This document shows, piece by piece, positions 6,465 through 64,000 of a stretch of 64,000 nt of DNA. Source of the DNA: Macrostomum lignano. Its lineage: Eukaryota. Position numbers and translations under genes: made by a program. The notes under the pieces are model-generated. The model made no database searches, was not told the DNA's origin, and saw only the letters and a program-made list of their open reading frames with translations. Each line of letters begins with the position of its first letter. Position 1 is the stretch's first letter. Location: the NCBI GenBank assembly GCA_002269645.1, contig NIVC01001126.1, positions 248,001-312,000 on the forward strand. Direction: 5' to 3'.

Positions 6465-14344
<7,880 letters not shown>

Positions 14345-20689: not shown

Positions 20690-21250
20690 GCAGCTAGAGA
20701 GATACATAGAAAAACACAGAGAGTGGCTGAAATAAATCTATAAAGAAAGGAGAGAAGAGATATTATGAGAGTGAGGAGAGGGAGAAAGGAGGAAGAGGGG
20801 AGAAGAGAGGGTACAGTGAGAAAAGAGAGGGAGAGGAGAGAAGAGAGGGAAAGGAGAGGAGGAGAAAAGAGAAGGAGAGGGGAGAGAGTTGACGGGAGAA
20901 GAGATAGCGCAAGAAGAGAAGAGAGGGAGAAGAGATAGACAGAAAAGAGAGGGAGAAGAGATACACAGAGAAGAGAAGAGAGGGAGAAGAGATAGACAGA
21001 AAAGAGAGGGAGAAGAGATACACAGAGAAGAGAAGAGAGGGAGAAGAGATAGACAGAGAAGAGAAGAGAGGGAGAAGAGATAGACAGAGAAGAGAAGAGA
21101 GGGAAAGGAGAGGAGGAGAAAAGAGAGGGAGAAGAGATACACAGAGAAGAGAAGAGAGGGAGAAGAGATAGACAGAGAAGAGAAGAGAAGAGAGGGAGAA
21201 GAGATACACAGAGAAGAGAAGAGAAGAGATATACAGAGAAGAGACGCAGA
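20690..21250. repeat. Purine-rich (GA) low-complexity and tandem tract downstream of the MEK stop
   Basis: GAGAAGAGAAGAGAGGGAGAAGAGATAGACA-type units; source of the Leu/Ser/Phe-rich minus-strand ORFs. Confidence 0.92.
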
Positions 21251-21579
21251 AGAATAGATGGAATGCTTGAGACCAAGAGACTGTTGTGAAGTACACCAGA
21301 AACGCGAGTGTGAGAGAGAGATGGAGCAAAGCCATAGGCTATTGTAGCGAAACTGACACAGCAAAATGCGAAGCAAACAAAAGACACAGAGGACAAAAAA
21401 ACAACACTGAAAACACAGACTAGCAGAAGGGACACTTGGAAATGCGGGCACAATGACTGATATTACACTGTATTCTATAAACTGAGACCACAATTACACA
21501 CGCGAGAGTACGAGAATTATATTATAGTATAGTTATTATTATTATTATTATACCAGTTTGACAAGGTAATTTTTTTAGT

Positions 21580-24500
21580 TCAAGCCTCATCAGACAACAC
21601 AGCTCGCAGGTAATTGCCCAGACAGATCTCCGGTTCCTGATTTTGTTCGTAACTCTGAATAAACGCGTGCTTCAACAGGCTCTCTAAGCCCAGCCGTTCT
21701 TTAGGATTTTTGCGCAGACAACAATCCACAAAGTCGCAGATATTTTCACTGAAAGCAAAGCTGGGCAGCTTCGGCGGCTGCTGATAAACAATGTAGGATA
21801 GCAGCTCGAATATGGCCATCTGCTTCGGCCCGTTCTGGGGCGGCTCCATGCCTGCGGTAGCGAGGGGGGCGATTCTTAGTATTGATATACAGTATTATGA
21901 TACTGCTTGTAGGGGCGATTCTCAATGTTTTTGGGGCGATTCTTAGTATTGATATACAGTATTATGATACTGCTTGTAGGGGCGATTCTCAATGTTTTTG
22001 GGGCGATTCTTAGTATTGATATACAGTATTACGATACTGCTTGTAGGGGCGATTCTCAATGTTTTTGGGGCGATTCTTAGTATTGATATACAGTATTACG
22101 ATACTGCTTGTAGGGGCGATTCTCAATGTTTTTGGGGCGATTCTTAGTATTGATATACAGTATTACGATACTGCTTGTAGGGGCGATTCTCAATGTTTTT
22201 GGGGCGATTCTTAGTATTGATATACAGTATTACGATACTGCTTGTAGGGGCGATTCTCAATGTTTTTGGGGCGATTCTTAGTATTGATATACAGTATTAC
22301 GATACTGCTTGTAGGGGCGATTCTCAATGTTTTTGGGGCGATTCTTAGTATTGATATACAGTATTACGATACTGCTTGTAGGGGCGATTCTCAATGTTTT
22401 TGGGGCGATTCTTAGTATTGATATACAGTATTACGATACTGCTTGTAGGGGCGATTCTCAATGTTTTTGGGGCGATTCTTAGTATTGATATACAGTATTA
22501 TGATACTGCTTGTAGGGGCGATTCTCAATGTTTTTGGGGCGATTCTTAGTATTGATATACAGTATTACGATACTGCTTGTAGGGGCGATTCTCAATGTTT
22601 TTGGGGCGATTCTTAGTATTGATATACAGTATTACGATACTGCTTGTAAGGGCGATTCTCAATGTTTTTGGGGCGATTCTTAGTATTGATATACAGTATT
22701 ACGATACTGCTTGTAGGGGCGATTCTCAATGTTTTTGGGGCGATTCTTAGTATTGATATACAGTATTATGATACTGCTTGTAGGGGCGATTCTCAATGTT
22801 TTTGGGGCGATTCTTAGTATTGATATACAGTATTACGATACTGCTTGTAGGGGCGATTCTCAATGTTTTTGGGGCGATTCTTAGTATTGATATACAGTAT
22901 TATGACACTGCTTGTAGGGGCGATTCTCAATGTTTTTGGGGCGATTCTTAGTATTGATATACAGTATTACGATACTGCTTGTAGGGGCGATTCTCAATGT
23001 TTTTAAGGCGATTCTTAGTATTGATATACAGTATTACGATACTGCTTGTAGGGGCGATTCTCAATGTTTTTGGGGCGATTCTTAGTATTGATATACAGTA
23101 TTATGATACTGCTTGTAGGGGCGATTCTCAATGTTTTTGGGGCGATTCTTAGTATTGATATACAGTATTACGATACTGCTTGTAGGGGCGATTCTCAATG
23201 TTTTTGGGGCGATTCTTAGTATTGATATACAGTATTACGATACTGCTTGTAGGGGCGATTCTCAATGTTTTTGGGGCGATTCTTAGTATTGATATACAGT
23301 ATTACGATACTGCTTGTAGGGGCGATTCTCAATGTTTTTGGGGCGATTCTTAGTATTGATATACAGTATTACGATACTGCTTGTAGGGGCGATTCTCAAT
23401 GTTTTTGGGGCGATTCTTAGTATTGATATACAGTATTACGATACTGCTTGTAGGGGCGATTCTCAATGTTTTTGGGGCGATTCTTAGTATTGATATACAG
23501 TATTATGATACTGCTTGTAGGGGCGATTCTCAATGTTTTTGGGGCGATTCTTAGTATTGATATACAGTATTACGATACTGCTTGTAGGGGCGATTCTCAA
23601 TGTTTTTAAGGCGATTCTTAGTATTGATATACAGTATTACGATACTGCTTGTAGGGGCGATTCTCAATGTTTTTGGGGCGATTCTTAGTATTGATATACA
23701 GTATTATGATACTGCTTGTAGGGGCGATTCGCAATGTTTTTGGGGCGATTCTCAATGATTTCTTGGGGCGATTTCAATGTTTTTGGGGCGATTCTCAATG
23801 TTTATTGGGCGATTCTTAATGATTTTTGGGGCGATTCTCAATGATTTCTTGGAACGATTTTCAATGTTTTTGGGGCGATTCTCGATGATTTCTTGGAGCG
23901 ATTCTCAATGTTTATTGGGCGATTCTTAATGATTTTTGGGGCGATTCTCAATGATTTCTTGGGGCGATTCTCAATGATTTCTTGGGGCGATTCTCAATGT
24001 TTTTGGGCGATTCTCAATGTTTTTGGGGCGATTATCGATGATTTCTTGCGGCGATTATCGATGATTTCTTGGGGCGATTTTCAATGTTTTTGAGGCGATT
24101 CTCGATGTTTTTGGGGCGATTCTCAATGTTTATTGGGCGATTCTTAATGATTTTTGGGGCGATTCTCAATGATTTCTTGGGGCGATTTTCAATGTTTTTG
24201 GGGCGATTATCGATGATTTCTTGGGGCGATTTTCAATGTTTTTGGGGCGATTATCGATGATTTTTCGCGGCGATTATCGATGATTTCTTGGGGCGATTTT
24301 CAATGTTTTTGAGGCGATTCTCGATGTTTTTGGGGCGATTCTCAATGTTTATTGGGCGATTCTTAATGATTTTTGGGGCGATTCTTAATGATTTTTGGGG
24401 CGATTCTCAATGATTTCTTGGGGCGATTCTCAATGATTTCTTGGGGCGATTCTCAATGATTTCTTGGGGCGATTCTCAATGTTTTTGGGCGATTCTCAAT

Positions 24501-27500
24501 GATTTCTTGGGGCGATTCTCAATGTTTTTGGGGCGATTCTCGATGTTTTTGGGGCGATTCTCGATGATTTCTTGGGGCGATTTTCAATGTTTTCTTGGGG
24601 CGATTCTCAATGATTTCTTGGGGCGATTTCAATGTTTTTGGGGCGATTCTCAATGTTTATTGGGCGATTCTTAATGATTTTTGGGGCGATTCTCAATGAT
24701 TTCTTGGGGCGATTCTCAATGATTTCTTGGGGCGATTCTCAATGTTTTTGGGCGATTCTCAATGATTTCTTGGAACGATTTTCAATGTTTTTGGGCGATT
24801 CTCAATGATTTCTTGGGGCGATTCTCAAAGTTTTTTTGGGCGATTCTTAATGATTTTTGGGGCGATTCTCAATGATTTCTTGGGGCGATTCTCAATGATT
24901 TCTTGGGGCGATTCTCAATGTTTTTGGGCGATTCTTAATGATTTTTGGGGCGATTCTCAATGATTTCTGGGGCGATTCTCAATGTTTATGGGGCGATTCT
25001 CACTGCTTTTTGAGCGATTCTTAATGTTTATGGGGCGATTCTCACTGCTTTTTGAGCGATTCTCAATGTTTTCTTGGGGCGATTCTCACTGCTTTTTAGG
25101 GGTGATTCTCACTGCTTTTTAGGGGCGATTCTCACTGCTTTTTAGGGGCGATTCTCACTAACAATGTCAAAGGATGATGAAAACAGCTTTTAAAATGTCA
25201 GATTCGCACATAAATTATAAGTTTCAGACAGTTTAAAATTATGCATAAAAATGTCAGTCTAAATTTCTAAGAAATGCATACACATTCGCAACGTTGCGCT
25301 TTTTCATCTTCCTGGATTGGTTCTGATTTTTATCTTGCTTTCTACCCAGTCCTTTCAGTGCCCTGAGTGGCGTGCAGAAGTGGAGCTTTGTAAAACGGGG
25401 ATTAAGCGAAAAAGAAATCGCCGAGTAGCATGGGAACTGGCCAAGATGATCACAAGATGACGAGAGAGACGGACAGAGCATATTGGACGCACTTTTATTT
25501 TGAACACCAAACCGACAGCGGGTGCCGAACAAGGCTGGGATGATTGAGTTTTTCGAGGGGCAATTCTACAGACAAATATTGCATATCGATTCTCTTTGCA
25601 ATGTCCTGAGATCATGAAGAGTGACGGGACGCATTAATTAACAAGCAAAATCTATGTCATTAAAATGAAGAGATTGATTTTAAATCATTTTAAATGCCAT
25701 GTCAGGATTATACTAAATGCGATGTCAGGATTATACTAAATGCGATGTCAGGATGATACTAAATGTGATTTCAGGATGATACTAAATGTGATGTCAGTAT
25801 GCTACTAAATGTGATGTCAGTATGCTACTAAATGTGATTTCAGTATGCTACTAAATGTGATGTCAGTATGCTAATAAATGTGATGTTAGTATGCTAAGAA
25901 ATGTGATTTCAGGATGATACTAAATGTGATGTCAGTATGCTAAGAAATGTGATGTCAGTATGCTACTAAATGTGATGTCAGGATGATACTAAATGCCATG
26001 TCAGGATTATACTAAATGTGATTTCAGGATGATACTAAATGCGATGTCAGAATGATACTAAATGCCATGTCAGGATGATACTAAATGCCATGTCAGGATG
26101 ATACTAAATGCCATGTCAGGATGATACTAAATGCGATGTCAGAATGATACTAAATGCGATGTCAGGATGATACTAAATGCGATGTCAGGATGATACTAAA
26201 TGTGATTTCAGGATGATACTAAATGTGATTTCAGGATGATACTAAATGTGATGTCAGTATGCTAATAAATGTGATGTCAGTATGCTAAGAAATGTGATGT
26301 CAGGATGATACTAAATGCGATGTCAGGATGATACTAAATGTGATTTCAGGATGATACTAAATGTGATGTCAGTATGCTAATAAATGTGATGTCAGTATGC
26401 TAAGAAATGTGATGTCAGTATGCTACTAAATGTGATGTCAGTATGCTAAGAAATGTGATGTCAGTATGCTACTAAATGTGATGTCAGGATGATACTAAAT
26501 GTGATGTCAGGATGATACTAAATGTGATGTCAGGATGATACTAAATGCCATGTCAGGATGATACTAAATGTGATGTCAGTATGATACTAAATGTGATTTC
26601 AGGCTGATACTAAATGTGATGTCAGGATGATACTAAATGTGATTTCAGGATGATACTCTCGCTCACCTCTCAGCCGCGTGCCCTTAACAGCGGCCTCCCT
26701 ATGCTCGGCCAGATTTCTTTGGCGGTCGCTGCTGAAAGCGCTGGTGTAGTCCCGGCTATCCGGCTGCGGAATGGGATAGCGACCAGTGGCCAGCTCGACC
26801 AGGCTTAGGCCCATAGACCAAACGTCAGACAATATTGAGTACTCTTCGCCATTGAGTCGTTCCGGCGCCATATAGGACCGGGTGCCAACGAAACTGTTGG
26901 CCAGACTGTCGATTAGCTGGCCGGAGACGCCAAAATCGCACAGTTTGCAGTCGCCTTCCAGACTAACCAGGATGTTGGAGGGCTTCACGTCTCTAGAAAT
27001 ATTCATGATGGATATATTGATTAGACCTGAATGAAGCATCAATTATGAGGGACATCTTGTATTGCCTCTAATATACATATAGGTCTGTCTGACGCCAATT
27101 AGGAATGCTGTAGACTTGTGTCGCTAATGATGTCGTCAATTGTGTCGCTAATGATGTCGTCAATTGTCTCACTAATGATGTCGTCAATTGTGTCGCTAAT
27201 AATTTTGTCAATTGTGTCGCTAATGATGTCGTCAATTGTGTCGCTAATGATGTCGTCAATTGTGTCCTAATGATGTCGTCAATTGCGTCGCTAATAATTT
27301 TGTCAATTGTGTCGCTAATGATGTCGTCAATTGTGTCGCTAATAATTTTGTCAATTGTGTCGCTAATGATGTCGTCAATTGTGTCGCTAATAATGTCGTC
27401 AATTGTGTCGCTAATAATGTCGTCAATTGTGTCGCTAATGATGTCGTCAATTGTGTCGCTAATGATGTCGTCAATTGTGTCGCTAATAATTTTGTCAATT

Positions 27501-47998: not shown

Positions 47999-50900
47999 GA
48001 CGAACCAAGCGAAAAGCTAGGCCAAGATTTAGAGCAGCTGAAGCTGCTAGAAGAATGCCAGTTCGAATCAGAGGAGCCAGAGTCAATGCGCATATCGCCA
48101 TTGGCTAGTGTGGCGCTCTCTGCCAAACTGATGCCACTTTTCCAAGATCGGGTTGATGGCGAATTCTACGTGTTTGATGGCGACTCTTTACTGATGGAGG
48201 CTGCGTCCACAGTGGGGTGGCAATATGGCCAGCAGTTGCATTTGTTCTATCTGGCCGAATCCATTCTGAAACTGCTCAAAGATCACGGCGGTGACTGTCA
48301 AGTTGTTTACTTTAATAGTTTTCGCAATGATCCACTGATGGATCTGTTTAGGCGCGCTATGCAGTTACACCTTGCCGTCAACTGTTCAGTGCCTGTGCAC
48401 ACCGACTTGGCCAAGTCTTGCTTCGACCCAGCCTGGCTTCACTATTTGAAGGAGGAGAAGCCTCTGTTCTTTATGCTTCACGACGGTGTTGGCTATGGCG
48501 AATCTGCCGAACAGCGGCACGTGAATTTGGCTTTGTCTAGCCTGGCTCGCAGGGTGCCAGTTGCTTATGTTAGCAGTCTGCAGCAGAATGACATGAAGCT
48601 GCAAGCATCCTATGTACAGTGGATGCCACTGTATGGCAGACTATTTCAAAAGCTATCATGTACAGATCGATCGGCAATGGTCCCTGAAACTGATGATCAT
48701 GTTGAAGCTTTAAAGACTGAGGCCGAGTTAATTGGTATGTTTTTAAATCTCTTTATTAGTTGATTAAGTCATACATGCGCAACCCCCCTGATTTACACTG
48801 GCCATGCGACTAACTTTTTGACCAAAAATGCGACTTACCTGTGAAAGAAACCCTAAAGAAAAAATTAACGAAATGTTGGGTAAACGGCAAGAGTCACTAT
48901 GACTGTCTTACTAATGCTAAATGCCTCGTCATCTAATTAGTACTACGCCTGTATGTTTTTGGGTGGGTATTTTTACCAGGTCGGCCAGCAGTTGCGCATG
49001 TATGGATTAAGTGTTTATAAGCTTGTTTATTTGAACTGCTGAGCTAATAACTTTATGATTTTTGTTTCTGTTCAGAACCAGGCAGCCGCCTTAAAGACCA
49101 CCTCGCTGTTAGAGTTGCTCTCCGAGCTCTAGTTAAAGATACTAACATCGAAAGCAACGACGAAGTTATTGAAAAAGTGAGCCGCTGGTGCCTGTATTTT
49201 GCCTGCATGTCCACCATGACGCTGGACGACCGGCTTCAGCTTGTTGCTGCTACTAAAAGCGCCAATCAAGCCGCTGCTGCAGGCGACAAGATAGAGGAGC
49301 AAAATTTGCTCTCTTCTTTGCATGAATTGGCCAAGCACCTGCGGCTCGAACTGCTGCCAATGAAGGGTCTCAACGAGTTCGCCGATCCAGAGTCTGTCGC
49401 CGATCTTATCGACATTTTTGTCTATCGTCGATTTGGTCAAGCCTGGATTAACCAACTGCCCGGTTGGCATCCGCGAGCGCGTGAAATTTTGGCTAAGTAA
49501 GTTCAGGCTTCAGTTTTCCGTTTAATTATGCTACAGTTTTTTTGTAATTTTTTAGTACACCTGCCTAAATGAGCAGGTGTGCTTCCTGCTCAGCCGCAGC
49601 TATTGCGCGGCGCATCTGAAGGCTGCGTACGGCCGTTCAGTCCAAGGACTGGGGGGGGGGGTCGCCATACAGCCTCAATAACCCCAGCTAATGCTGGCAC
49701 CCATTTTACAGCTGGGTGAACTGAAGCAATGCAGAGTTAAGTGTCTTGCTCAATCAAGGACACAAATTGTTCCGAGTAAGTCGGACGATAGTGTACGGCC
49801 AATATTAAAACGGTTTCTTAGGCTTCCCGGCTGAGTTTTTAACTTTTGTGACCAGCACAGAGAGAGGAGGAGGTCACGGACACGGAGTATTAACTTGGTG
49901 GATTTTTTTATTTATCCACCAATCGCTGCATATTTCTACGACAGCTTTCGGCAAAACTATTTCAGCCTAGGGACTGACAGAACTGACCTCTGTAGCTAGC
50001 CACGCTATGTCAGCCTAGGACCAGCAAATTCAGCTATGGTCCAACCATACTCCGTAGACACGTGTCTCGAAAAAAAACCAGCTAACAAGTGGTGGTTGGT
50101 TGAGATTGGATGGCCCTATGCTGAGATAGCTAGGCAATGGGGGTTGTCTGGAAGCGAGAAGACATGGTAATGGCCATAGACACGAGCGGCGATAGCGGGG
50201 GTGTGGGAGTGAAGCCCCCACTTACAACCATAGACTATTTTATCTTACGCTCATAGACTGGTTCGTTTTCTAAAATGATATCCCGGTAAATTGCTTTATT
50301 GTCAATTTCAAACGAATGACCGGTCATTGCTTGAATGTCGTTGCCTTAACGTAAATTACCAGTACCATAGACATTTTGAACAATGGCTATGTTTTAACCG
50401 TGACTATAAAAATAACAGGACGGTAAATAGCTCGAGTCTGTAAATTCTGATTTTTAGTGATGCTACATTAATTAAAATTTTTTTTATAACGGCGTTCGCT
50501 TTCTTTCAGATACGAAAGCTACGCCTCTAAAATTTGTACCGAGCTGCAAAAGCTGAACAGTGCCGATCAATCGGATGCCTCGCCTCTATTGTCGCTGTCA
50601 ATCTCTGAGCAGGCGCTCCCACATGAGCCTGTCATTGAGCAGGCGGCTGAAATGGCGCCGCTTCAGCGTATCGACAATCGTCTGTTGAAAGAGTTTGCCG
50701 GCGAAATTCTTGACAAACTTGGCTCGTCTGGTTGCATATCGTTAACTAACGAGCCTGGACAGAACTCGTCGATGCTATTCGACGAGCGCTGTCATTGGCA
50801 CGTTAATCGGGAGCTTCGCGACGATTTAGAAGAGCAAGGCGAGCCTGAGCTGTCTTCTAATCCTATTCTAAGGCAGAGACAGCTGAAGAGTATTCAGAAG

Positions 50901-53900
50901 TACAAGAATTACATCAGCATGTACGGCGAGTCGCTGCATGGCGAGACTAGCGAGACTATCGTACTGTCAACCGGTTCTGACGGCGCGTCCGCTGCATCTG
51001 CCGGTGCTAACGAGAAGCCGAAATCTGCTAACCAGCAAAAGCAGAAGCATCAGAAGCAGCCAAAAGGCAAGTCAAAGCCAGTTTCTAAGGCTGATGCCAT
51101 CAAAGAAGAGAATTTGCGCGCCAAAGCCGACAAAGATACGAAGAAGCTAAAGGAGCAGTGGAAAAATCTGTTGCCGGGCGTTAAAAAATTGGAACCGGCT
51201 CAGGCTATCGCTGAGGCCACGCGTATGGCGGAGTCCTGCACAGTGCAGGATCGAATTTTCGAGGAGCCGGTACTTTTCGTAATGCGAGAGCAGTACAAGT
51301 TGTGGAAGACCAGCTGTGCTAGTAGTGGAGGCAGCGGTAAGTCTTTCAGCGCCTTGGCAGATCTAGTGCGGACCCTGCACAAGTACACAACCGAGCCGTT
51401 GGTTAGCATGATTAGTTCTGAATTGCGCGTCAAGATTGCCGAATTATTTATCATGGTTGGATTTAAAGAGGCTGCCGCTGTCTCTAGTGTAGACGCGGAG
51501 CGCTTAAAACATGTGCAAGTTGAAAAAGAATGCGTCTGTCCACTGAATTATCGCGACTTTCAAATGCAGCACATGGGCCACCTGATGCAGAGAAATGTTC
51601 GATTCGATCCAGATCCCAGGGTGAAGGGATTCATTCCCGACACCTGGCAGAGAGAACTGCTAGATGTGGTTGACAGGCGCGAGTCTGCCGTTATTGTTGC
51701 TCCAACATCGTCTGGAAAAACATTCTGCTCTTACTACTGCATGAAAAAGGTTCTGGAGATGAGCGACGAGGCTGTCGCTGTTTACGTAGCGCCAACCAAA
51801 GCTTTAGTGAATCAGGTTCAGGCTTCCATTAGTGCCAGGTTTTCTAAGCCAAACCTGACTCCCGGCATGGAGCTATGCGGAGTATTCACTCGAGACTATA
51901 ATCACAAAGCCACTAGCTGTCAGATTTTGGTGACAGTGCCGCAGTGCCTTGAACTGCTGTTGCTGAGTCCCAGGCGTCAAGGCTGGGCTAGCCGTATTCG
52001 CTATGTGATCTTTGACGAAGTTCACTGCATCGGCACCGGGATCGGGGGCGTTGTCTGGGAATATCTGCTCTGCCTAATCCGGTGTCCGTTTCTTGCCCTG
52101 TCGGCAACTATCTCTAACAAAGACTATTTTCACGACTGGCTGCAGACCATCAAGCAGTTTGTGCAGGTTCAAGACTCGACTCTTCTGAAGCAATCTCAGC
52201 CGATGCAGCCTAAGAAGCAACAGCGACAGAAAGGTGCCGCTCCTGCTGCTGTAGAAGGTTACAAAGTGAATCTGGTGACCTACTCTGAGCGCTATTCAGA
52301 CATTCGCACTTCCGTTTATCTGCCCAAGAGTGAATTTATTGCTGAAGTTAATCCGTGCGCTTTTCTTAGCGACAAACTATTGCGAATCAACGGATTCCCA
52401 AGGAATTTGAAGCTGTCACCGAAGGAATCTACCGAGGTTTGGTCAGCCGCTTTGCAGTGCTTCACGGACGATCCAGCTGCAGCTAAGGCTCTGCAGAAAT
52501 TTAAACCGCAATCGTTTTTTGGCACTGAGCCAATTACTAGGTAATAATTAATGACCAATCATTTTTTAATGTCTTTAGCCTACCAGTTAAAGCAGGGGTC
52601 AGCAAACCCCGGCCCGCCAAGCCTTTCTATCCGGCCCGCTCAAGGTTTGCGTCTCTTCTTAGCTTTCTTCTCCCTTCTCTTCTCCCTTCTCTTCTCCCTT
52701 CTCTCCCTTCTCTTCTCCCTTCTCTCCCTTCTCTTCCTTCTCCCTTCTCTCCCTTCTCCCTTCTCTCCCTTCTCCCTTCTCTCCCCTCTCCCTTCTCTCC
52801 CCTCTATCATCTCCCTTTTCTCTCCTCTCTCTCATCTCTCTTCTCTTTATTCTCTTCTCTCATTTCTCTCTCCCTTCTTTTCTCTCTACCCTCTCTTCTC
52901 TCCTCTTCCCTCTCTCCTCTCTGGTCTCCCTTCTTTCCCTTCTATCCTCTCTCCTGTCTACTCCTCTATTTCCTCTTCTATTTCTCTTCCTCTGCCTCAC
53001 AGTCATGCGCCGGATTCTTCATCTGGCCCTTGAGGTAAAAAGTTTGCCAACCCCTGAGTAAGACTCTGAAAAGACAAAAGCATACTTGAGCAACACGAGG
53101 CGATTGGATATTTTCCGTGACAATAGCCAAAATAGCTATTTAAACTCTCATTCTCTCAAATTAAATCTCAGAAGAAAAAAAGAACTAATATTTTTTTAGG
53201 TGCTTCCGATATTTTATAATGACCTCGTGTTGCACCTGTAAGGTTTTGGCCCTAAAATTGTGAAACACTTCCCACCCACCGCTTCAATTTAAAAAAACGC
53301 AGAACGCAATTTCGGGAACTGGAAGTCGGCCTGAAATCGACTGTGTCTGAGCTGCTTCGCCAGAGTCCACATGCCAAGTCTACCCAGCTGCTAACTACAA
53401 TTCAGTCAATTGAGGAGCAGCAGAATGTGACTCAACAGTTTGAGTTCCTATCCGACGTTGATCTTATTGAAAAATTTCCCGATCTAATCGATCGGCTGCG
53501 TTCCGAGGGTCGCTTGCCAGCTTTGGTGTTTATGAACGATCGTAAAGGCATTGAAAACCTTGCCGCGTCGCTTGTCGATCGAGCCAATGATCGGATTAAG
53601 CAAGCCGTTAATCCTAATCTGCTAGAGCGCATGGAGAAAGCTCGCGAAGCGATGGCCATCGCCGCCAAGCGCAATCGCGACAAAGAGGATTCGGACGATG
53701 AGAATCCAGCCGAGATCGAATTGGAGTCCTACTACAGAGATCGGCTGGAACTGCGCAGCAAAATTCAGGCCTGCGCTTATTTTAAACCGCAGGCTGTGCA
53801 AGAATCTTTTCTCAACAAAGTGCTGGAGAAGCTGCTTGATGAAGATGTGAAGCATATGCTGGAATTGGGCGTCTGCTATCATCATGCCGGTTGTTCTTCG

Positions 53901-56782
53901 AAGCACCGACAAGCTGTTGAGATGCTGTTCCGTAGCGGTCATTTGCAGGTTAGTTTGGGTTGTTTGCTTCTGTTGTTCAGCTTTGAGTAGCTGCTTTGTT
54001 CCCCTCACCCCACCGGCCCACCTTGTAAGCCGTTATGGAAATCAATCATTTTGCATCAGGTCGCTGAAATATAGTGCCTGCGGCGTTAAAGTGAGTGCCT
54101 GCGGCGTTAAAGTGAGTGCCTGCGGCGTTAAAGTGAGTGCCTGCGGCGTTAAAGTGAGTGCCTGCGGCGTTAAAGTGAGTGCCTGCGGCGTTAAAGTGAG
54201 TGCCTGCGGCGTTAAAGTGAGTGCCTGCGGCGTTAAAGTGAGTGCCTGCGGCGTTAAAGTGAGTGCCTGCGGCGTTAAAGTGAGTGCCTGCGGCGTTAAA
54301 GTGAGTGCCTGCGGCGTTAAAGTGAGTGCCTGCGGCGTTAAAGTGAGTGCCTGCGGCGTTAAAGTGAGTGCCTGCGGCGTTAAAGTGAGTGCTTGCGGAG
54401 CTAAAATGAGTGCACTGCGGCGCCAAAATGAGTGCCTGCGGCGCCAAAATGAGTGCCTGCGGCGCTAAAATGAGTGCTTGCGGAGCTAAAATGAGTGCAC
54501 TGCGGCGCCAAAATGAGTGCCTGCGGAGCTAAAATGAGTGCACTGCGGCGCCAAAATGAGTGCTTGCGGAGCTAAAATGAGTGCACTGCGGCGCCAAAAT
54601 GAGTGCCTGCGGCGCCAAAATGAGTGCCTGCGGCGCTAAAATGAGTGCCTGCGGCGATAATGTGAGTGCCTGCGGCGCTAAAATGAGTGCACTGCGGCGC
54701 CAAAATGAGTGCTTGCGGAGCTAAAATGAGTGCACTGCGGCGCCAAAATGAGTGCTTGCGGAGCTAAAATGAGTGCACTGCGGCGCCAAAATGAGTGCCT
54801 GCGGCGCCAAAATGAGTGCCTGCGGCGCTAAAATGAGTGCTTGCGGAGCTAAAATAAGTGCACTGCGGCGCCAAAATGAGTGCCTGCGGCGCCAAAATGA
54901 GTGCCTGCGGCGCTAAAATGAGTGCTTGCGGAGCTAAAATGAGTGCACTGCGGCGCCAAAATGAGTGCCTGCGGCGCCAAAATGAGTGCCTGCGGCGCCA
55001 AAATGAGTGCCTGCGGCGCTAAAATGAGTGCTTGCGGAGCTAAAATGAGTGCACTGCGGCGCCAAAATGAGTGCCTGCGGCGCCAAAACGAGTGCCTGCG
55101 GCGATAATGTGAGTGCCTGCGGCGCTAAAATGAGTGCCTGCGGCGCCAAAACGAGTGCCTGCGGCGATAATGTGAGTGCCTGCGGCGCTAAAATGAGTGC
55201 CTGCGGCGCTAAAGTGAGTGCCTGCGGCGCTAAAATGAGTGCCTGCGGAGCTAAAATGTGTGCCTGCGGAGCTAAAATGAGTGCCTGCGGCGCTAAAATG
55301 AGTGTATTTGGCGCCAAAATGAGCGCCTGCTTGCGGCGCCAAAACGAGTGCCTGTCTAGGGCGCCAAAACAAGTGCCTGTGACACTAAAACGAGTGCCTG
55401 TGATAGTAAAATGAGTGCCTGCGGTGCAAAAATGTGCGCCTGTGGCGCGAAAATGAGCGCTAACAATACCGATTCCCAAAATAATTTGCATGTAGGAATT
55501 TAGTCATGTACATGTAGAATTCTTGGCTTTATCCCCTCTTCCCACTATAAAATCCCATAGTGTTTTACTTTGGAATCTCTCTCGCGCCCCGTGCAGGTGG
55601 TCACAGCAACTGCCACCCTGGCTCTGGGCGTTCACATGCCCTGCAAAACTGTCGTATTCGCTGGCGATGACAAGTTTCTGGACGCGCTCAACTATCACCA
55701 GATGGCCGGTCGGTCCGGCCGGCGTGGCTTCGACAACATCGGCAACATTGTGTTCTACGGCGTGCCCGCCTCTAAGATTGCTCACCTGATCCAAGCCGAC
55801 CTGCCCGAACTCAAGGGCGGCTTTCCGCTCACCTGCGCTTTCGTTCTCAGACTGTTGCTTCTGACTGGGAATGCCACTGATCCGGAGGTGGCCCACGCTA
55901 AAGCTGCTACGGTTTTGGAGCACCCGTTTGCTGCGCACCAGAAGCCGGATATGATGCAGCAATTGCGATTGTTCTTCCTGTTCAGTGCGGAGTTTCTGCA
56001 CAGGCAGGATCTTATTAATGAGTTGGGCGCTCCTCTGGTGAGTCTCATTGAGTAACAATTTGGCACCGTGTGTTTTTCCCAAGCTGGATGCCATTTAGTC
56101 TAAGAGTCCTTTCACAGTCGTTGCAGGTAACACAGGTAAAATAGTGAAAGAAGTGACTCTCTAGACGACTATAAAACGACGAGAGTCAATTTGAGGCGTT
56201 TTATTGCCCGCGACTCTGAAACTAACAACTGTGTACATTTAGTCTACTTGTGTTAGTAGAAAGTTAAGCTTTAACAACGACTTTTTTTGCGACTCCTTGT
56301 TTTACGATTCTCTGCAACTCACGTGACTCGCTCTCGGCCATTCTTCAGGACCTGGCCGGCTTAGTATGCCACATGGGCTACCAGCAGCCTGGCAACTTCG
56401 TGCTCACCTATCTGCTTCGATCTCCCGCTCTGCGCCAGCTGTGCGAGCCGGCCAGCAAACAGCTGCCGTCAATTCACTACGGATTCTATTGCGAGGGCTG
56501 TCAGACTGGCGAACCGATAGTTGGTCAGCGATTCAAGTGCACCAAGTGCTGGTCTGACTACAGCCTGTGCTCCAACTGCTACTCCGGCCGGCCCAATCAC
56601 AGCCGGGGCCGGCAGCAGCACACGGCCGCCGATTTTGAGCGTCAATTGCCGCCGTTGCGAGTGCAATTCTCCGACGAGACGTTGAGAAAATTGGTTCGAA
56701 TCCTGTGCCACCTGTTCACTAAGATGGAGCTGGCCCGGTCTCTGGTTAAAAGGACGGCTGATGGAGCTCTGCATTATTTAAG
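47999..56782 (+). CDS. DDX60: DDX60-like Ski2-family DExD/H RNA helicase with an inserted ZZ zinc finger; 3' end not found in the window
   Basis: Exons 47999-48734 (first ATG 48086), 49076-49496, 50510-52540, 53303-53948, 55597-56037 and 56349-56782, all GT-AG and in phase. N-terminal DDX60 motifs: FDGDSLL, GQQLHLFYLAE. Also RFDPDPRVKGFIPDTWQRELLD, motif I APTSSGKT, DEVH, SAT, ATLALGVHMPCKTVVF, QMAGRSGRRGFD. Exon 6 ends at a GTAATA donor with no terminal exon before the transposon. Confidence 0.92.
48770..49004. mobile_element. MITE of the CATACATGCGCAAC-TIR family in DDX60 intron 1
   Basis: Perfect 14-bp TIRs; perfect TSD GATTAAGT at 48762-48769 and 49005-49012. Confidence 0.92.
49690..49770 (+). 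mobile_element. SINE/L2-type retroposon fragment (MIR/CORE-like block) in DDX60 intron 2
   Basis: GGCACCCATTTTACAGCTGGGTGAACTGAAGCAATGCAGAGTTAAGTGTCTTGCTCAA..AGGACACA resembles the conserved block shared by MIR/L2-related elements (recalled from memory). Confidence 0.5.
52593..53056. mobile_element. hAT (Charlie-like) MITE with an internal CT-rich tract in DDX60 intron 3
   Basis: TIR CAGGGGTCAGCAAAC / GTTTGCCAACCCCTG, with GGCCCG subterminal motifs. The interior (about 52660-53000) is CT-rich. Flanks AGTTAAAG and AGTAAGAC match only partly. Confidence 0.8.
54072..55440. repeat. 21-bp minisatellite (GAGTGCCTGCGGCGTTAAAGT / GAGTGCCTGCGGCGCTAAAAT)n in DDX60 intron 4
   Basis: About 65 copies; source of the periodic SACGVKV / AAGTHFN ORFs. 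Confidence 0.96.
56475..56636 (+). other. ZZ-type zinc finger domain within DDX60 exon 6
   Basis: HYGFYCEGCQTGEPIVGQRFKCTKCWSDYSLCSNCYSGRPNHSRGRQQHTAADF fits the ZZ consensus C-x2-C...PIxGxRxKC-x2-C..DY.LC-x2-C...H...H.F. Confidence 0.88.
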
Positions 56783-57730
56783 GTAATAAAATACCTGCCG
56801 TTTTTCCGCTAGAATCATTGATGCCGATTGGTAAACCTCTGACAAAATACGTTTATCTTTGCTGATATGCTTTTACCCTACTAGTAGTAGTTCATGCTTG
56901 GAAAATGTTTGCGACGGGGATAGACAAAGAGTTTCTCTACAAATATAGAGCAGTTAAGACGCAGAGTGTACATTCCTCAGGGGTATAGTTTTGTCTCGCA
57001 TAGAAACGCCTAACCGCAGTACCCCTGTGACACTTGTCTCTGCCTGGCTGAAAGCTTGTACTGAGTTAGTAGGCTGGGTTGGAGGGTACCCGCCAAACTT
57101 AATTCGTCCGATTTTTTGCTTTTAGCACCGGTATCTTGATCCGGTTTATTGTCCGGAATCGGCCCATATCCACAGTGTAAAGAAACCGGAACAGAGCCGG
57201 ACAAAAAGTTACGTTTCAGGACCAGGCGTTCAGATTTTATCGCCTTTGCCCTGTTTTATGTCCGGTGATTATTCCGAAGTTTGTTCCGGTGCCTGATCCG
57301 GTCAAAGAGAGCCGGATGTTGCGCCGGTTTTGTTCCGGTGCCTGATCCGGTCAAAGAGAGCCGGATGTTGCGCCGGTTGCTGGACCGTGGCATTGACCGA
57401 TCCAAATGGGATCGAGACCGGACCGAAAGCCGGACCGGCCCGGTTTAATCTTGAACCGTTCTCTCCGGAGCAGGAGGCAGTCTTCCACGCGAATAGAAAA
57501 TGAAAAGAAAATTGAAGAGTTTAAACTGAAGTACTTTTTTTTCAATCCAGGCATTTGTCAACCTTTCCATTTCCATGGCAATTTATTTTTACTTCCGAAA
57601 CATCGAAAGCACCGAACATCGCAAATCACACATGGTCCCTTACAAATGCGTCGCTTCCCTTCTGGCGCTCACAAATGAGTCATAAAGGTGATAAAGGTGA
57701 TAAAGGACGTTCAATTGGCCGAACCAACCG

Positions 57731-59644
57731 TCAAACCGCAAGCTTCAGCAAGTCAACGAGGCTACCGGCCGACTGCAAATCGTCCATGCTCGTGACGAGG
57801 TTAGCCGTCGTCACTGAAGCCGCCAACGTATCCGTAGCCGCAGTCGTAGTCGCAGGCGAAGGGTAAATGAGAACCGGATGGTTCTCATCAGGCTCCTCCA
57901 TGACGACAACGATGGCATGGGAGTCTGTCGTCGAGGAGGCCTTCTTCGGCCTCTTGGTAGCGCTTGGCCTCGGGCCGCTCGATCCGGGCCTCGGGCCGGT
58001 GATACGGCGGCACTTCAGTTTCGGCAGACCCTGGCGAACGCGTGCCGTCTCGCGGCAACGCGAGAAAGCGCGTTGTAGTTGGCGCTTAGTGGCGATGACG
58101 CCAACGTTCTGCAGCCACTGCTTAGCGATAAGCAGTTTGGCTGGGTTAGCGGCAGCAGTCAGCCGGTCCCCCAGCTTTCGGCCCGAGAAATTTGCGCCTG
58201 AAAACTCCGTCTCAGAGAACAGTGCCCGCAAGAGACACCGCAACAGCGACGAATGTTCCGAACGCAGTATTGCGGCGTAGTCCGGACGCTCTTCGTCGAT
58301 GTCCACATGTGGCTGGCCAGCCTTTTCTTTGGCCTGCAAATATGTACGGAGATGAGCTTCCAGTATAGAACGGCTCCCGACCTTGACAAATATATTCGGT
58401 TGGCGGTCCGACAGTGCGACGCGCCCACCGCTATTACTAGCACCGGCCGAGTTTTCAGCGCTGCAGGCAGTCATTATCGCGTGGGTGTCGCTGGCAGACA
58501 AGGCAGCGTCAGCGACGAAGCGTTTGGCCGAGAAATCACTATCGTCCGCGCTATCACAGCTCATGCGTGTTTCGTCGTCGCTGTGACCAGCGACGTGTGT
58601 GCTAGTATCAGCATTGGTGGACAAATTGTCCGGGTCGGCAACAAGCATAGTGGACGCCCTGATCAGGAATGCGTTGCATGATTGCGCCCTGTTTTGCATC
58701 TGCCGAATGACGTTGTCCTTGCGACGAATCTCACGCTCAAGGCTGCTCTCGCGCAGCGCCAAATAGGAGGTTCGCTCCTTCGCGTCGTCCAGACGCCGGC
58801 GCAGCTCCACTTCGGCAGCCGACTTGTCTCGTATCTCGCCTCCTGTCAGTGGAGACAAAAGTTAATGTTACTCCGATCAATCATACATTCCCCAGAACAT
58901 TCAACACTTACTTAGTGTCTCCACTAAGATGTCCGCCTTGCGACTTTCCAGTAGCAGGCTTCGACAGGACGCGCAGCCTCGAGGTGGCTCTCTGGTCGGG
59001 GCGTGCACATTCGTGAGGCGACAAGAAGCCGTCGCTTCTTCACGACTTTCGAAGGGCCCACGGATGAGAGTGCCGATCCACCGACGGGCAGTTTTCCTAT
59101 TACTTTTGGCCACTTTAATGGCAACAACACTCCCAACAGAAACTGGGATGGGTCCGTCGCTGCGGCGCTGCACAATATTCTCCGTAGTGGAGACAACGTC
59201 CGTGCGTTCCCGGGATTCGTCATAGCGCATGATGAAGAAGCGCTCGGTAGGCTCTTGCTTGTACGGGAGCATATCGGATCCTTCTTTCGACGGGTTGCCA
59301 CCGTCCCGGTTGACTCGCCTGCCACGTGTGTCTCGATCGCCAGAATCAGTAGCTGAGCACCCCGCCTCATGGGCGAAGCAATCGTCTGCGTCTGCACCAT
59401 TGGGCGTCGGATTTGCGGTTGGCGGCTTAGGTATGGTCGTCTGGACAGCATCGATCACGGGTGTTAGCGTGTCACTGCCAGCTGGTAGATTACCATTCGC
59501 AGCTGGCTGATCGTCCTTCGGCTTCGCCTTCGCCTTCTTCAGAGATCTTGGAGCTTTAGACTTCGAAGCAGTACTAGCCGCAGCGGCGGGAGCTGCGGGA
59601 GCGGCAGCTTTTTTTCCGCTTGCGAAGCAGGTCGCCTTGCCCAT
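57731..59644 (-). CDS. Transposon accessory protein with coiled coil and BEN domain, 2 exons, about 614 aa
   Basis: Exon 58912-59644, then a 69-nt GTAAGT..CAG phase-1 intron (58843-58911), then exon 57731-58842. Coiled coil ELRRRLDDAKERTSYLALRESSLEREIRRKDNVIRQMQ. BEN-like segment SSLLRCLLRALFSETEFSGANFSGRK..ANPAKLLIAKQWL..LQRAFSRCRETAR. Confidence 0.75.
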
Positions 59645-60355: not shown

Positions 60356-61339
60356 TCAATTCTTTCCGTGGGCCTTCTTCTCCTGCTGGAGCTCACGCAG
60401 ATCCCTTAGTGGCCGTCTGCGGCGGCGTAGCGGTCGCATTGCCGCCACAGGTGCTTCCGGCGGAGTCTCGGGCATGTCAATCGCCCAGAACTGACGTGGA
60501 TCCGCAATGGGTTTCGGTTGGTTCGACCGGTGTTTGCCGGCCTGCTGCAGTCGTCTTTGGCGGCTTTCTGGAGACAGGTTAGAATACCACGACTCGCAGT
60601 CCGGACAGCAGTGCGCCTGCAATTCTAGCCTGTCGGCTTTGCGCCTGCATGGGAAGACGCACGCCGGTCTCGAAGTCCTCTCCGGCAACAGGTTGTAATC
60701 AGCGCGGATTTGAGAAGACGACATGCCGGCATACAGGCCTGCAAAGAGACTGACCCGGCGGCTGGGTTCCGGTGCCGGCTCTGCGGCGGGTGGTACGTGG
60801 TACATGTCAGGGCCCTGCGTCTCAAAACCCTCCTCGTCGTCGTAGTTGAACCTGTCGACTGCCTCGGGTTCCGGTGCCGGCTCTGCGGCGGGTGGTACGT
60901 GGTACATGTCAGGGCCCTGCGTCTCAGAACCCTCCTCGTCGTCGTAGTTGAACCTGTCGACTGCCTCGGGTTCCGGTGCCGGCTCTGCGGCGGGTGGTAC
61001 GTGGTACATGTCAGGGCCCTGCGTCTCAGAACCCTCCTCGTCGTCGTAGTTGAACCTGTCGACTGCCTCATCGGCGGGTTCCTCATTCGATGCCGCCACG
61101 GGTTTCGCTAGCACAAGTGGAGTCGAATCGAAAGGCCACATCGACTGCAACACTTGCGTACTAGGAATGTCATCTAATGCGACGATGGCCCTATGCGCCC
61201 GCACCATGGACCCCGTGTTAAAAACTGGCGACGTGGGACGTGAACGGCCGAGTCGAAGGAGCTCAGAACGGAGCAAACGGTTCTCCTCTGTGAGGGCGCG
61301 GCAGATGGGACAGCTGGCTGCGTGTGACCAGTGGTCCAT
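60356..61339 (-). CDS. RBBP8: Intronless CtIP/Sae2/Ctp1-like protein (327 aa) inside the CACTA element
   Basis: The C-terminal block RRKADRLELQAHCCPDCESWYSNLSPESRQRRLQQAGKHR...DPRQFWAIDMPETP aligns almost without gaps to recalled human CtIP [40 protein letters not shown]...TPENFWEVGFPSTQ. There is an N-terminal CxxC plus short coiled coil (CPICRALTEENRLLRSELLRL) and a basic C-tail. This is a homologue; orthology to the host gene is not established. Confidence 0.85.
   Translation of the reverse strand: MDHWSHAASCPICRALTEENRLLRSELLRLGRSRPTSPVFNTGSMVRAHRAIVALDDIPSTQVLQSMWPFDSTPLVLAKPVAASNEEPADEAVDRFNYDDEEGSETQGPDMYHVPPAAEPAPEPEAVDRFNYDDEEGSETQGPDMYHVPPAAEPAPEPEAVDRFNYDDEEGFETQGPDMYHVPPAAEPAPEPSRRVSLFAGLYAGMSSSQIRADYNLLPERTSRPACVFPCRRKADRLELQAHCCPDCESWYSNLSPESRQRRLQQAGKHRSNQPKPIADPRQFWAIDMPETPPEAPVAAMRPLRRRRRPLRDLRELQQEKKAHGKN
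60765..61070 (-). repeat. Three in-frame 102-bp (34-aa) tandem repeats inside the CtIP-like ORF
   Basis: CGTAGTTGAACC at 60841, 60943 and 61045. Peptide EAVDRFNYDDEEG(S/F)ETQGPDMYHVPPAAEPAPEP. Confidence 0.95.
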
Positions 61340-61940: not shown

Positions 61941-64000
61941 TCAATGATATGACAACTGTGGGTGAGGCAACAGTGCGATGTGGCTCTCGGAAAGGACACA
62001 CGAACCGATGACATCCTCAAGCGGTAGTAGTAGCGGATCTCCGTAGTCCGCCAAATCGCCGAATGGATCGGCTGCAAGCCGCCGCACGTGAGCGCAACGG
62101 CAGCCACGCCTAGCGGAATTGCCACGTACAGCACATAGTGCCTCTAACGGGTCCTGATCTGGTTCGCGGACCGGTAGAATTAGGACCCGAAGTGACACTT
62201 GTGCACCGGTACTACTAATGGCTTCAACTCGTGCAAAACGAAATGTCGTCGGACGAAACCCGGAAATTGCAACGAAACACGATGCTACAGTGCGGCGCAG
62301 TGGGCGGTTATCGTTTTGTCGGCTGATGAAAACTACAATGACCAGCCCTGAGGGCAGTGTCGCACTGCGCCACCCATCCAGCATGCCATGCGGTCGTCGA
62401 AGAACTATGGAGTTACGGAGAACGATTTCCGTGCGCCGATGGCTCCGTTGTCGCCTCTCCAAGCCCTCAGCACCTAGCAGACGCGCTCCAATCTGGTTGG
62501 CGGCTATCTGTCTCTCCACTGACGTAACCACGTCAGCCTCGTTGTTGCTCGAGCCATGAAGGAGCTGTTGTAATCGTTTGTGCATGGTTTCGAACAACCC
62601 AGTTGATTGATGATGTATCGGCCCACCGGAGTCTACAGCGCTCAGCATGTGGCAGCAAACTTGATGGGCGTTGTACGTAAGCGCCCGAGTGGAATATAAG
62701 CGCGGTAAATTTGCGAGGAAGCATCTGAGGGACACCTCGACGTGGTCCAGTTCGTCCTTTGGCCCACCTTCAAGTCCCATCCAAAACACAGCCGTTGATA
62801 GAACTAGTAAATGGTTGTAGTGGTCCGGCGGCAGAAAATCACCCAGAACGAGCGGAGCGAACACTAAAATCCACATTTCTAGTTCGTGTCCACGAAGATG
62901 GCGCAGGTCCTTCAGCTTCCTAACACTGTGGCGTTGCACTGATCGTGGCACGAGAATGCGATTGAGACGCTCGCCGACATCGCCAAGTCTGGGGTGCAGG
63001 TCCGGACAGTTAGTGTCTGCACGGTCTGGCTTCTCATTGCGGATTGCGAACATCTGTAGCAATATCCGACGAACGAGCCCGCCGCACAACTGGTGCAAAT
63101 AACAGGGCGGACAACCTTTTATAAAATCAAAGCCAGGCAGCCTGCTTAGAGGAGAGTGTCCGTACACACCGAGTACGTCGCGGCAAGTACCACCGCCGTT
63201 GCTCACATGTAGATCGGCAAGGTGCGAAGTGTCAGCAGCATTACGCACTGTTGTCTGTGTACAGCCTAGCATAGCAGGAGCGTTCAACATGGCGGGTGTA
63301 GCTTCGACGTGAAAAAGTCGCCCGCCGCCTTGCAAGTAACCGGTCCGCAGATAGCATTTGTCGCAGTATTTTCCGGAAAAGCGACGCATGCATAGAGCGT
63401 CCGCCCTCGCCGGGGCGTCCATCATCCCAAGGAGGGGATGGAGGCGCAGGACGCAAGTCTCGCCGTTGGCGTTGTTGTACGTTACACCTATGGTACGCAG
63501 GCTGGACAAGACGTTTACCATAACAGGCAGAAATGCGGCGGCCTTGACTTTTTGCTTGCCAGCCCACACTCCTGCGATGAAAACGTATCGCAGTTTAACT
63601 CGGTCGTGTACCTCTACGATGGAAATGTAGAATGGGCACACTTCGACGCAGCTAGTACTGAACCGAGGAAAACCATCGAAGCAGAAAACGTACGACAGAT
63701 CGGCTCGGCGCTGTACATCGATGACCTCCAGAAAGTCTCGGTACAACGAGCTGTTGTACACGTGCAAAACGTCCGGCTGCACGTCGCGGTCAGCAGGCCA
63801 AACGACGTTGTCAAGAAGTCCACCGCTCTCGATAGACTGTCGGATCTGCTGACGCACGTCGAATGCGTAAAAGTTGGCCACAGATTCTTCGCCGCAGTGT
63901 GCACAGACGTCACCATCGGAAACGTGCCGAAAACGAGTGCGACGCATGCAGCTATTGCAAACGGCGTTGCAAACCGTCGAACCAATCGCTGACTGCGCTG
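61941..64000 (-). CDS. CACTA/EnSpm DDE transposase (TnpD/Tnp2-like), open through the window edge
   Basis: The frame has no stop from about 63998 down to the stop codon at 61941-61943. It has an N-terminal Cys cluster, CFDGF (D at about 63676), GVWAGKQK, MMDAPARA (D at about 63418), FSGKYCDKC, GVYGHSPLSRLPGFDFIKG, CYLH (C/D-x2-H motif), RGHELEMW, TYNAHQ and GPIHHQSTGLFE (E at about 62590). Confidence 0.9.
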   Translation of the reverse strand, partial: AQSAIGSTVCNAVCNSCMRRTRFRHVSDGDVCAHCGEESVANFYAFDVRQQIRQSIESGGLLDNVVWPADRDVQPDVLHVYNSSLYRDFLEVIDVQRRADLSYVFCFDGFPRFSTSCVEVCPFYISIVEVHDRVKLRYVFIAGVWAGKQKVKAAAFLPVMVNVLSSLRTIGVTYNNANGETCVLRLHPLLGMMDAPARADALCMRRFSGKYCDKCYLRTGYLQGGGRLFHVEATPAMLNAPAMLGCTQTTVRNAADTSHLADLHVSNGGGTCRDVLGVYGHSPLSRLPGFDFIKGCPPCYLHQLCGGLVRRILLQMFAIRNEKPDRADTNCPDLHPRLGDVGERLNRILVPRSVQRHSVRKLKDLRHLRGHELEMWILVFAPLVLGDFLPPDHYNHLLVLSTAVFWMGLEGGPKDELDHVEVSLRCFLANLPRLYSTRALTYNAHQVCCHMLSAVDSGGPIHHQSTGLFETMHKRLQQLLHGSSNNEADVVTSVERQIAANQIGARLLGAEGLERRQRSHRRTEIVLRNSIVLRRPHGMLDGWRSATLPSGLVIVVFISRQNDNRPLRRTVASCFVAISGFRPTTFRFARVEAISSTGAQVSLRVLILPVREPDQDPLEALCAVRGNSARRGCRCAHVRRLAADPFGDLADYGDPLLLPLEDVIGSCVLSESHIALLPHPQLSYH

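Follow-up and report, generated by a model that had tools for sequence, protein, structure and literature searches.

A 64,000-nucleotide stretch of the genome of the flatworm Macrostomum lignano (contig NIVC01001126.1, positions 248,001–312,000 of the forward strand; hereafter the window), taken from GenBank assembly GCA_002269645.1, which is M. lignano assembly Mlig_3_7 (PMC10733133), carries an intronless, intact open reading frame (ORF) for a CtIP/Ctp1-type protein that appears to lie within a DNA transposon-like element. At the position that cyclin-dependent kinase (CDK) phosphorylates in human CtIP (T847) and yeast Sae2 (S267), the protein has an aspartate, Asp280. The reading that we prefer, with a confidence that stops a little short of an even chance, is that a CtIP paralogue was captured by the element, is still intact there, and has its CDK switch fixed in the charged state. 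More striking than the aspartate itself is the setting of the gene, a CtIP within a DNA transposon.

Identity of the ORF and the residue at the CDK site

In terms of identity, the C-terminal region of the ORF product matches the Pfam family for the SAE2/CtIP C terminus (PF08573; aa 261–292, 22.4 bits, E = 2.7e-4) above the curated gathering cut-off of 19.8 bits, and the match coincides exactly with the interval 60462–60560 that had been flagged by an initial annotation of this DNA. When the C-terminal 135 residues of the ORF were searched exhaustively with phmmer against 1.84 billion representative proteins, 109 CtIP-family representatives were returned at E ≤ 1e-3; those with names come from insects, crustaceans, spiders, and cnidarians and are annotated as DNA endonuclease RBBP8 or as Ctp1 C-terminal domain proteins. 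These two results bear out the homology of the minus-strand ORF to CtIP that the annotation had proposed. A word-indexed homology search with the whole ORF gave no matches, probably because its Pro/Glu-rich repeats swamped the candidate list.

All phmmer matches were aligned on a hidden Markov model anchored to the window sequence. In this alignment the C-rich-H module, a CxxC followed by an (R/K)HR motif, is complete in the window protein. Plus-strand positions 60500–60502 read ATC, giving GAT as codon 280 of the minus strand within the local peptide GKHRSNQPKPIA-D-PRQFWAIDMPETPP (wider context ...AHCCPDCESWYSNLSPESRQRRLQQAGKHRSNQPKPIA-D-PRQFWAIDMPETPPEAP...), and the aspartate stands directly before P-R-Q-F-W, as annotated. 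In 103 of the 109 database representatives, the column of Asp280 and the one after it hold T-P or S-P; besides the window protein, the exceptions are one cluster with Glu, the Ala of M. lignano, and a few sequences with indels. Within the family set, the database sequences with IPPNTPENFWEVGFPSTQ are P0095 and P0109. Because the D-P-x-x-F-W spacing of the window protein is canonical and gap-free and the column is S/T-P in nearly all relatives, Asp280 is a real, rare state in the correct register, and the annotated alignment with human PN-T847-PENFW is correct. The window protein has Asp280-Pro281 where the CDK consensus calls for Ser/Thr-Pro before x-x-F-W; the site serves regulation and is not shared by every family member, S. 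pombe Ctp1 having Ile in its place.

The flanking contact residues P281, F284, W285, D288, and T292 are canonical in the window copy. D288, at canonical spacing, is the equivalent of Sae2 D275, which contacts Rad50 R125, and T292 is the equivalent of Sae2 T279 and CtIP T859, with Pro as the next residue here. The P-E-T-P at this site reads as the annotation described it; as a departure from T-Q, however, it is ordinary family variation, the column pair being T-Q in 34 sequences and T-P in 24.

The profile of the clade's CxxC...HR region (aa 245–271) also matches a consensus C2H2 zinc-finger design (PDB 1mey, E = 1.4e-4), and the CtIP C-rich-H module resembles a degenerate zinc finger. This C2H2 likeness was the sole signal in PDB sequence searches with the CtIP C terminus, the clade profile, and the transposase-like protein described below.

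The ORF in its transposon-like element

On the same strand, the window carries in order a large transposase-like ORF (61941 to >64000), the CtIP ORF, and two further ORFs, o247 and o375. An 863-residue protein (P0001), encoded on the Tara Oceans contig L001 and found on 4 metagenome contigs, matches the large ORF with 50% identity across 98% of the length of that ORF. The gene order of L001 is that of the window, a transposase-like gene followed by homologues of o247 and o375. L001 is bounded by terminal inverted repeats (TIRs) of 33 nt with 97% identity (97–129 and 10011–10043), which start CCCGCTG, and near each end it has an array of CCGG-containing subterminal repeats, the two arrays in inverted orientation; its anatomy is that of a class II element. 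No target-site duplication flanks the L001 TIRs as delimited, and the ends may be wrongly defined. In the window, a probable terminus with the sequence CCCGCCAAACTTAATTCGTCCGATTTTTTGC, whose exact end is uncertain by about 35 bp, is seen at 57089, 3′ of o375, with 19 CCGG sites in the adjacent 500 bp, including a perfect 2×49-bp duplication. The termini read CCCGC(T/C)..., not CACTA.

The neighbors of the CtIP ORF, the transposase-like ORF and o247, lie next to each other in L001, and the CtIP ORF is inward of the putative terminus at ~57089; judged from this gene order, it sits well inside a TIR-type DNA transposon-like element that runs from ~57089 to >64000. The gene order and TIRs of L001 and the ~57089 terminus thus uphold the annotated location of the gene within a transposon-like element. 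L001 itself has no CtIP-like coding sequence between its transposase-like gene and the o247 homologue, only a 1-kb spacer, so CtIP was either gained in the lineage of the window or lost in that of L001.

It might be argued that nothing here is mobile, and that the four ORFs form a cluster of host genes or what is left of a domesticated element, with the CtIP ORF as a second host paralogue. A single putative element end within the window, the lack of a target-site duplication even in L001, and a transposase of unproven family would all fit such an arrangement, but it leaves unexplained the 33-nt, 97% identical TIRs of L001 with inverted subterminal CCGG arrays at both ends, the same kind of terminus 3′ of o375 in the window, and a gene order conserved between a flatworm and a marine metagenome contig. 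We regard it as highly unlikely.

The transposase-like protein of the window, searched whole and in pieces, gave no Pfam match, including to Transposase_21, and the C-terminal part of P0001 matches DUF4218 weakly (E = 0.21, 11.9 bits). An AlphaFold2 model of the protein from a two-sequence alignment was unusable (pLDDT 31.5). The protein has sequences that we take to be CACTA/Tnp2-like motifs (DGF; D-A-P-A...C-x-x-C; G-H-E). No further copies of the element emerged when JGI metagenome contigs and IMG/VR were scanned with profiles of the transposase and of the CtIP clade.

The C terminus of o247, GCASCRSLLLESRK... (in L001, at 7509–8237, SCPSCKQLMTELQ...), resembles the N terminus of the CtIP ORF, SCPICRALTEENRLL...; in both, a CxxC is followed directly by a short helix, which may reflect a shared interaction motif or chance.

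The host CtIP-like gene and related sequences

The nearest homologue of the window protein (P0002, PAA54340.1, gene Mlig004387g2) comes from M. lignano itself and aligns over the C-terminal ~110 residues (E = 1e-23) with 56% identity by phmmer and 53–55% in BLAST and pairwise alignments. A second M. lignano copy (P0111, Mlig004387g1) lies on another contig; the protein accessions of Mlig004387 are PAA54340.1 and PAA88737.1. Both copies have introns and are syntenic, as homeologues of two subgenomes, with an acetyl-CoA synthetase gene (ACAS) upstream and EMP24 downstream, and no homologue of the three other element proteins is found within 10 kb of either. Given the introns, the ACAS/EMP24 synteny, and the absence of element-protein homologues within that distance, Mlig004387 is a host CtIP-like gene.

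At the site in question Mlig004387 reads ...GRHRDNQRPPVQAPNFFAIEMPPTP (VQAPNFF), with Ala at the column, one residue fewer, and Phe in place of Trp, and no Ser or Thr is present anywhere near the CDK site of this protein. The initial annotation had set the element's aspartate against host copies that might keep T/S-P or might share the Asp; the M. lignano gene lacks S/T-P, but its residue is Ala, not Asp. Because the acceptor is lost in both (Ala in the host, Asp280 in the element), neither the host nor the element copy can be gated by CDK at the T847/S267-equivalent residue. M. lignano provides the only flatworm host comparator: the 20 named family clusters in which other flatworm CtIPs were sought are all arthropod or cnidarian.

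Neighbor joining of the domain sequences pairs the window protein with the M. lignano gene as its sister, with L004/P0028 branching next and P0003 after them; a homology search with the clade profile returned P0028 alone. P0003, from a 1.6-kb metagenome contig, keeps T-P (ARTPPHFW). L004 is a 910-bp Logan contig (SRR31628425) with a CtIP-clade fragment at 524–895 that reads GCG GAT CGC CAG TTC TGA where the window reads GCG GAT CCA CGT CAG TTC TGG, and it represents either a pseudogene or an assembly error. Beyond the TGA, the frame of L004 stays open as far as a basic RKRRRIPLR tail.

Between the window copy and the host gene, synonymous differences are saturated (pS 0.86) and the nonsynonymous proportion, pN, is 0.33; together with the intact ORF, these values are compatible with constraint. 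They point to the element CtIP as an old, diverged paralogue of the flatworm's own CtIP and, because synonymous differences are saturated, to an old capture or to arrival of the element from another flatworm. The same comparison bears on whether the gene is a passenger, a decaying capture of the kind known from Pack-type CACTA elements that pick up host fragments, in which case neither the CtIP ORF nor its aspartate would have function or significance. We consider this distinctly improbable. L001 manages with the same three other genes and no CtIP, no other copies turned up in the JGI metagenome contigs or IMG/VR, and the related fragment L004 has an in-frame stop. Nevertheless, the 327-residue ORF is intact with all family motifs, pN is 0.33 at saturated pS, and an unconstrained sequence of such age should neither stay open nor keep a Pfam-significant domain.

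A retrocopy origin of the CtIP ORF was also considered, and no poly(A) tract was seen 3′ of the stop codon. GC content and GC3 do not set the ORF apart from other element ORFs or from host exons.

N-terminal motif and triplicated S-E-T repeats

A stretch of ~20 residues near the N terminus, ALTEENRLLRSELLRL, gives non-significant matches (E = 0.28–4) to full-length CtIPs, all placed at the end of their N-terminal coiled coil, where its counterparts are KTLTDENRRLSLELEQLRRS in P0027, LKEENRKLNLELQRI in P0020, and LTAENRRLKFAL in the M. lignano host protein. A Pfam scan of the ORF gave no CtIP_N match.

The middle of the ORF consists of 102-bp repeats that are 99–100% identical and carry an acidic S-E-T/T-Q motif in triplicate (...FNYDDEEG-S-E-T-Q-GP..., with F-E-T-Q in the third repeat). 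Since the units are near-identical, a recent expansion is suggested. DDEGSET is present once in the M. lignano host CtIP-like protein. In S. pombe Ctp1 and in MDC1, the FHA domain of Nbs1 binds acidic S-D/E-T motifs that CK2 has phosphorylated (PMC8079451); the triplicated S-E-T motifs resemble these CK2-type ligands, and by analogy they may play the same role here. The S-E-T-Q of the repeats (DDEEGSETQGP) is also an ATM/ATR-type T-Q site.

The domain set of the window protein appears to resemble that of a minimal, Ctp1-sized CtIP. A protein much shorter than metazoan CtIPs, with several putative Nbs1-binding S-E-T motifs that could titrate the Mre11-Rad50-Nbs1 complex (MRN), could be imagined as a decoy or modulator whose binding to MRN, or to host CtIP by way of the coiled-coil motif, brings no proper activation, dampening resection at excision sites and favoring end joining. 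However, the size and domain set also resemble those of the fully functional S. pombe Ctp1, and the activating C-terminal module is complete, which makes a decoy extremely unlikely.

A proposed fixed charge at the CDK switch

The function of the CDK site is well described. In human CtIP, T847A impairs resection whereas T847E does not, and T847E supports some resection in G1 and under CDK inhibition, less than in S/G2 (PMC2666608). The S267E variant of Sae2 supports clipping by MRX and is partly phosphatase-resistant, with a ~5-fold loss of activity on dephosphorylation indicating that other phosphorylations are needed (PMC6167383). The statement of the annotation that acidic substitutions partly bypass CDK is thus documented in both studies. 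In a model supported by charge swaps, phospho-S267/T847 bridges Rad50 R77/R79 and Mre11 R187 (bioRxiv 10.1101/2023.08.05.552090), and an Asp at this position could therefore supply a fixed negative charge.

The captured, charge-fixed paralogue that we favor would be a minimal CtIP/Ctp1-type gene in a TIR transposon, with a short coiled-coil motif, three S-E-T/T-Q motifs, and a full C-terminal module (C-rich-H / KHR / x-P-x-x-F-W / D / T-P). The fixed carboxylate of Asp280 would most likely supply part of the phosphate's charge at the contact with Rad50 Arg77/79 and Mre11 Arg187, and the element CtIP would be permanently primed to co-activate the MRN endonuclease, probably below the maximum. 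Judged by the engineered mutants, charge mimicry is plausible; MRN activation and any benefit for the processing or repair of transposase-made breaks are, like it, inferred.

Several observations weigh against this reading. The host gene reads Ala without S/T-P, which suggests that loss of the CDK phospho-acceptor is a trait of this flatworm CtIP lineage and not specific to the transposon; the role of the site may have been lost in the lineage, and the Asp could then be neutral. A natural acidic residue also seems to occur in a metazoan host gene: a cluster of five CtIP C-terminal sequences has Glu at the column (PTK-E-P-D/N-x-F-W), and the contig that carries one member, P0113 (L006, ENA ERZ26858887, 10001–10315), bears ESCRT-II and ADAMTS-type genes but none of those of the element. 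In S. pombe, the site of Ctp1 is Ile283, compensated by Rad50 L77 (bioRxiv 10.1101/2023.08.05.552090), an indication that the CtIP-Rad50 contact can be rewired to a hydrophobic pair. The engineered Glu mimics are partial and need further phosphorylations, and Asp is shorter than Glu and carries one charge against the two of a phosphate. L004 has the same Ala-Asp codons as the window, with the Pro codon missing and a stop at the Trp codon. In terms of the element, Asp280 is read from a single copy, one terminus (~57089) falls within the window while the element runs past 64000, and the putative transposase is identified from architecture and the weak DUF4218 match of P0001.

Neutral variation at a site no longer used is accordingly the main rival of the charge-fixed reading: the CDK-gated salt bridge would have been replaced or abandoned in the lineage, with Asp as one tolerated state of a decommissioned site. 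The variety seen in the clade (D-P-R-Q-F-W in the window, A-P-N-F-F in the host, A-D-R-Q-F-stop in L004, T-P-P-H-F-W in P0003) and the precedent for rewiring in S. pombe (Ctp1 I283 with Rad50 L77) are what such drift would produce. We nonetheless consider it fairly unlikely, as P281, F284, W285, D288, and T292 all stay canonical in the window copy and, of the residues that could stand in for Ser/Thr, acidic ones alone are known to preserve function.

Two claims built on the alignment fare less well than it does. The annotation's inference that the element's copy may be cell-cycle independent overreaches, because the ORF keeps S/T-P at four other sites (S37, T73, S256, and T292, the last being the T-P of the C-terminal module) and because the S267E and T847E proteins need further phosphorylations. 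As for the Asp as a transposon adaptation for cell-cycle-independent action, a rare Asp does reside inside the element, but the Ala of the host gene, which shows the site to be gone there too, weakens the claim; the change has the look of a trait of the lineage, and adaptation of the transposon is not proven by it. The strongest form of such a proposal, in which the transposon has captured a host CtIP and kept it as an always-on MRN co-activator (a fixed acid at the switch and triplicated S-E-T motifs) so that breaks and hairpins are clipped and channeled into homology-directed repair at any cell-cycle stage, is in our view improbable. If it were true, an always-on element CtIP would restore the donor copy and raise copy number.

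The literature searched contains no precedent for a transposon-encoded CtIP. If functional, the protein would be the first known to us, and the mobile element would come equipped with a regulator of its own for DNA-end resection and the choice of repair pathway. Thr, Ala, Asp, Glu, and Ile, which occur naturally at one contact residue across the host gene, the transposon copy, and outgroups, form a series that provides a ready test of how the CDK-gated CtIP-Rad50-Mre11 switch gets lost, mimicked, or rewired.

Feature coordinates and genomic surroundings

Table 1. Features of the CtIP-type ORF and its element, in window coordinates
Feature	Position	Strand	Basis
CtIP/Ctp1-type ORF, 327 aa, intronless and intact	60356..61339	minus	ORF list, Pfam SAE2, 109 family matches
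Codon GAT, Asp280, CDK-phosphorylated Ser/Thr position (human T847, yeast S267)	60500..60502	minus	sequence and family alignment
D288-M-P-E-T292	60464..60478	minus	+8 and +12 from the phospho-site column
(R/K)HR motif of C-rich-H domain, K269-H270-R271	60527..60535	minus	aligns with SRHR/SKHR/GRHR in all family members
CxxC of C-rich-H domain, C245-P-D-C248	60596..60607	minus	invariant C..C in clade alignments
Three 102-bp tandem repeats, each ...FNYDDEEG(S/F)ETQGPDMYHVPPAAEPAPEP	60764..61069	minus	TRF and repeat finder
N-terminal C-P-I-C and short coiled-coil motif ALTEENRLLRSELLRL	61250..61312	minus	weak, positionally consistent matches
Large transposase-like ORF, 668 aa listed, frame still open at window end	61941..64000	minus	homology to P0001
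Element ORF o247, C-terminal CxxC and helix	58901..59644	minus	L001 homologue, same position
Element ORF o375, N-terminal coiled coil	57731..58858	minus	L001 homologue, same position
Probable element terminus CCCGCCAAACTTAATTCGTCCGATTTTTTGC... and CCGG-rich subterminal repeats	57089..57480	.	resembles L001 TIR CCCGCTGAAAAAATCGTCCGGTTTTT

A multi-exon gene for a DDX60-like helicase (PIN-like_DDX60, DEAD, and Helicase_C domains) occupies 48086–56786 on the plus strand. Its last exon encodes a ZZ zinc finger and ends about 300 bp before the element terminus, the transposon having inserted just downstream. A 237-bp interspersed repeat at 49547–49783 recurs twice in each of the two M. lignano CtIP-like loci with 84–87% identity, and the non-allelic M. 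lignano copies are 85–89% identical to each other; with identity at within-genome levels, the repeat by itself ties the window to M. lignano or a very close relative. An ORF for SRPRB, the signal-recognition-particle receptor beta subunit (16935–17558, minus strand), gives a strong match and is an ordinary host gene. Exact-protein look-ups of the CtIP, o247, and SRPRB ORFs of the window found no identical copies on record. Strong GC and AT skews at 1–4000, 10000–14000, and 20000–26000, with GC skew up to about ±0.3, suggest strand-biased simple or satellite sequence in these stretches.

Comparison with known systems

The window protein shares with human CtIP (RBBP8) and yeast Sae2 the CxxC, the RHR, the [S/T]-P-x-x-F-W frame, and the downstream T-Q/T-P module. 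Human CtIP has 897 residues, whereas the window protein has 327 and is encoded inside a transposon. The engineered T847E and S267E variants place an acidic residue at the identical column, and these Glu mutants are functional and partly bypass CDK; the window residue is natural, is Asp and not Glu, and is known here from sequence alone. S. pombe Ctp1, which is fully functional at 294 residues, is likewise a small CtIP. It has a coiled-coil N terminus, to which the short motif of the window protein may correspond, and acidic S-x-T motifs to which the FHA domain of Nbs1 binds; its C-terminal module activates MRN without CDK phosphorylation at this position. Ctp1 differs in being a host gene and in pairing a hydrophobic residue, not an acidic one, with Rad50 (Ile283 with L77).

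Mlig004387 has in common with the element copy the DDEGSET and LT.EN..L motifs, the basic RRR.RPLR tail, and the lack of S/T-P at the site; it is set apart by its introns, its ACAS/EMP24 synteny, and its Ala (QAPNFF) in place of the element's Asp. At the level of the element, CACTA/CMC-type transposons offer the closest likeness, as multi-gene TIR elements with short subterminal repeat arrays and a large transposase, a likeness that includes the weak DUF4218 match. With termini that read CCCGC..., no target-site duplication seen, and no Transposase_21 match, any placement of the element in that superfamily is tentative. Capture of host genes is known in the CACTA/CMC superfamily, to which Pack-CACTA elements (PMC6379663) and the flatworm transposon SmTRC1 (PMC1636069) belong.

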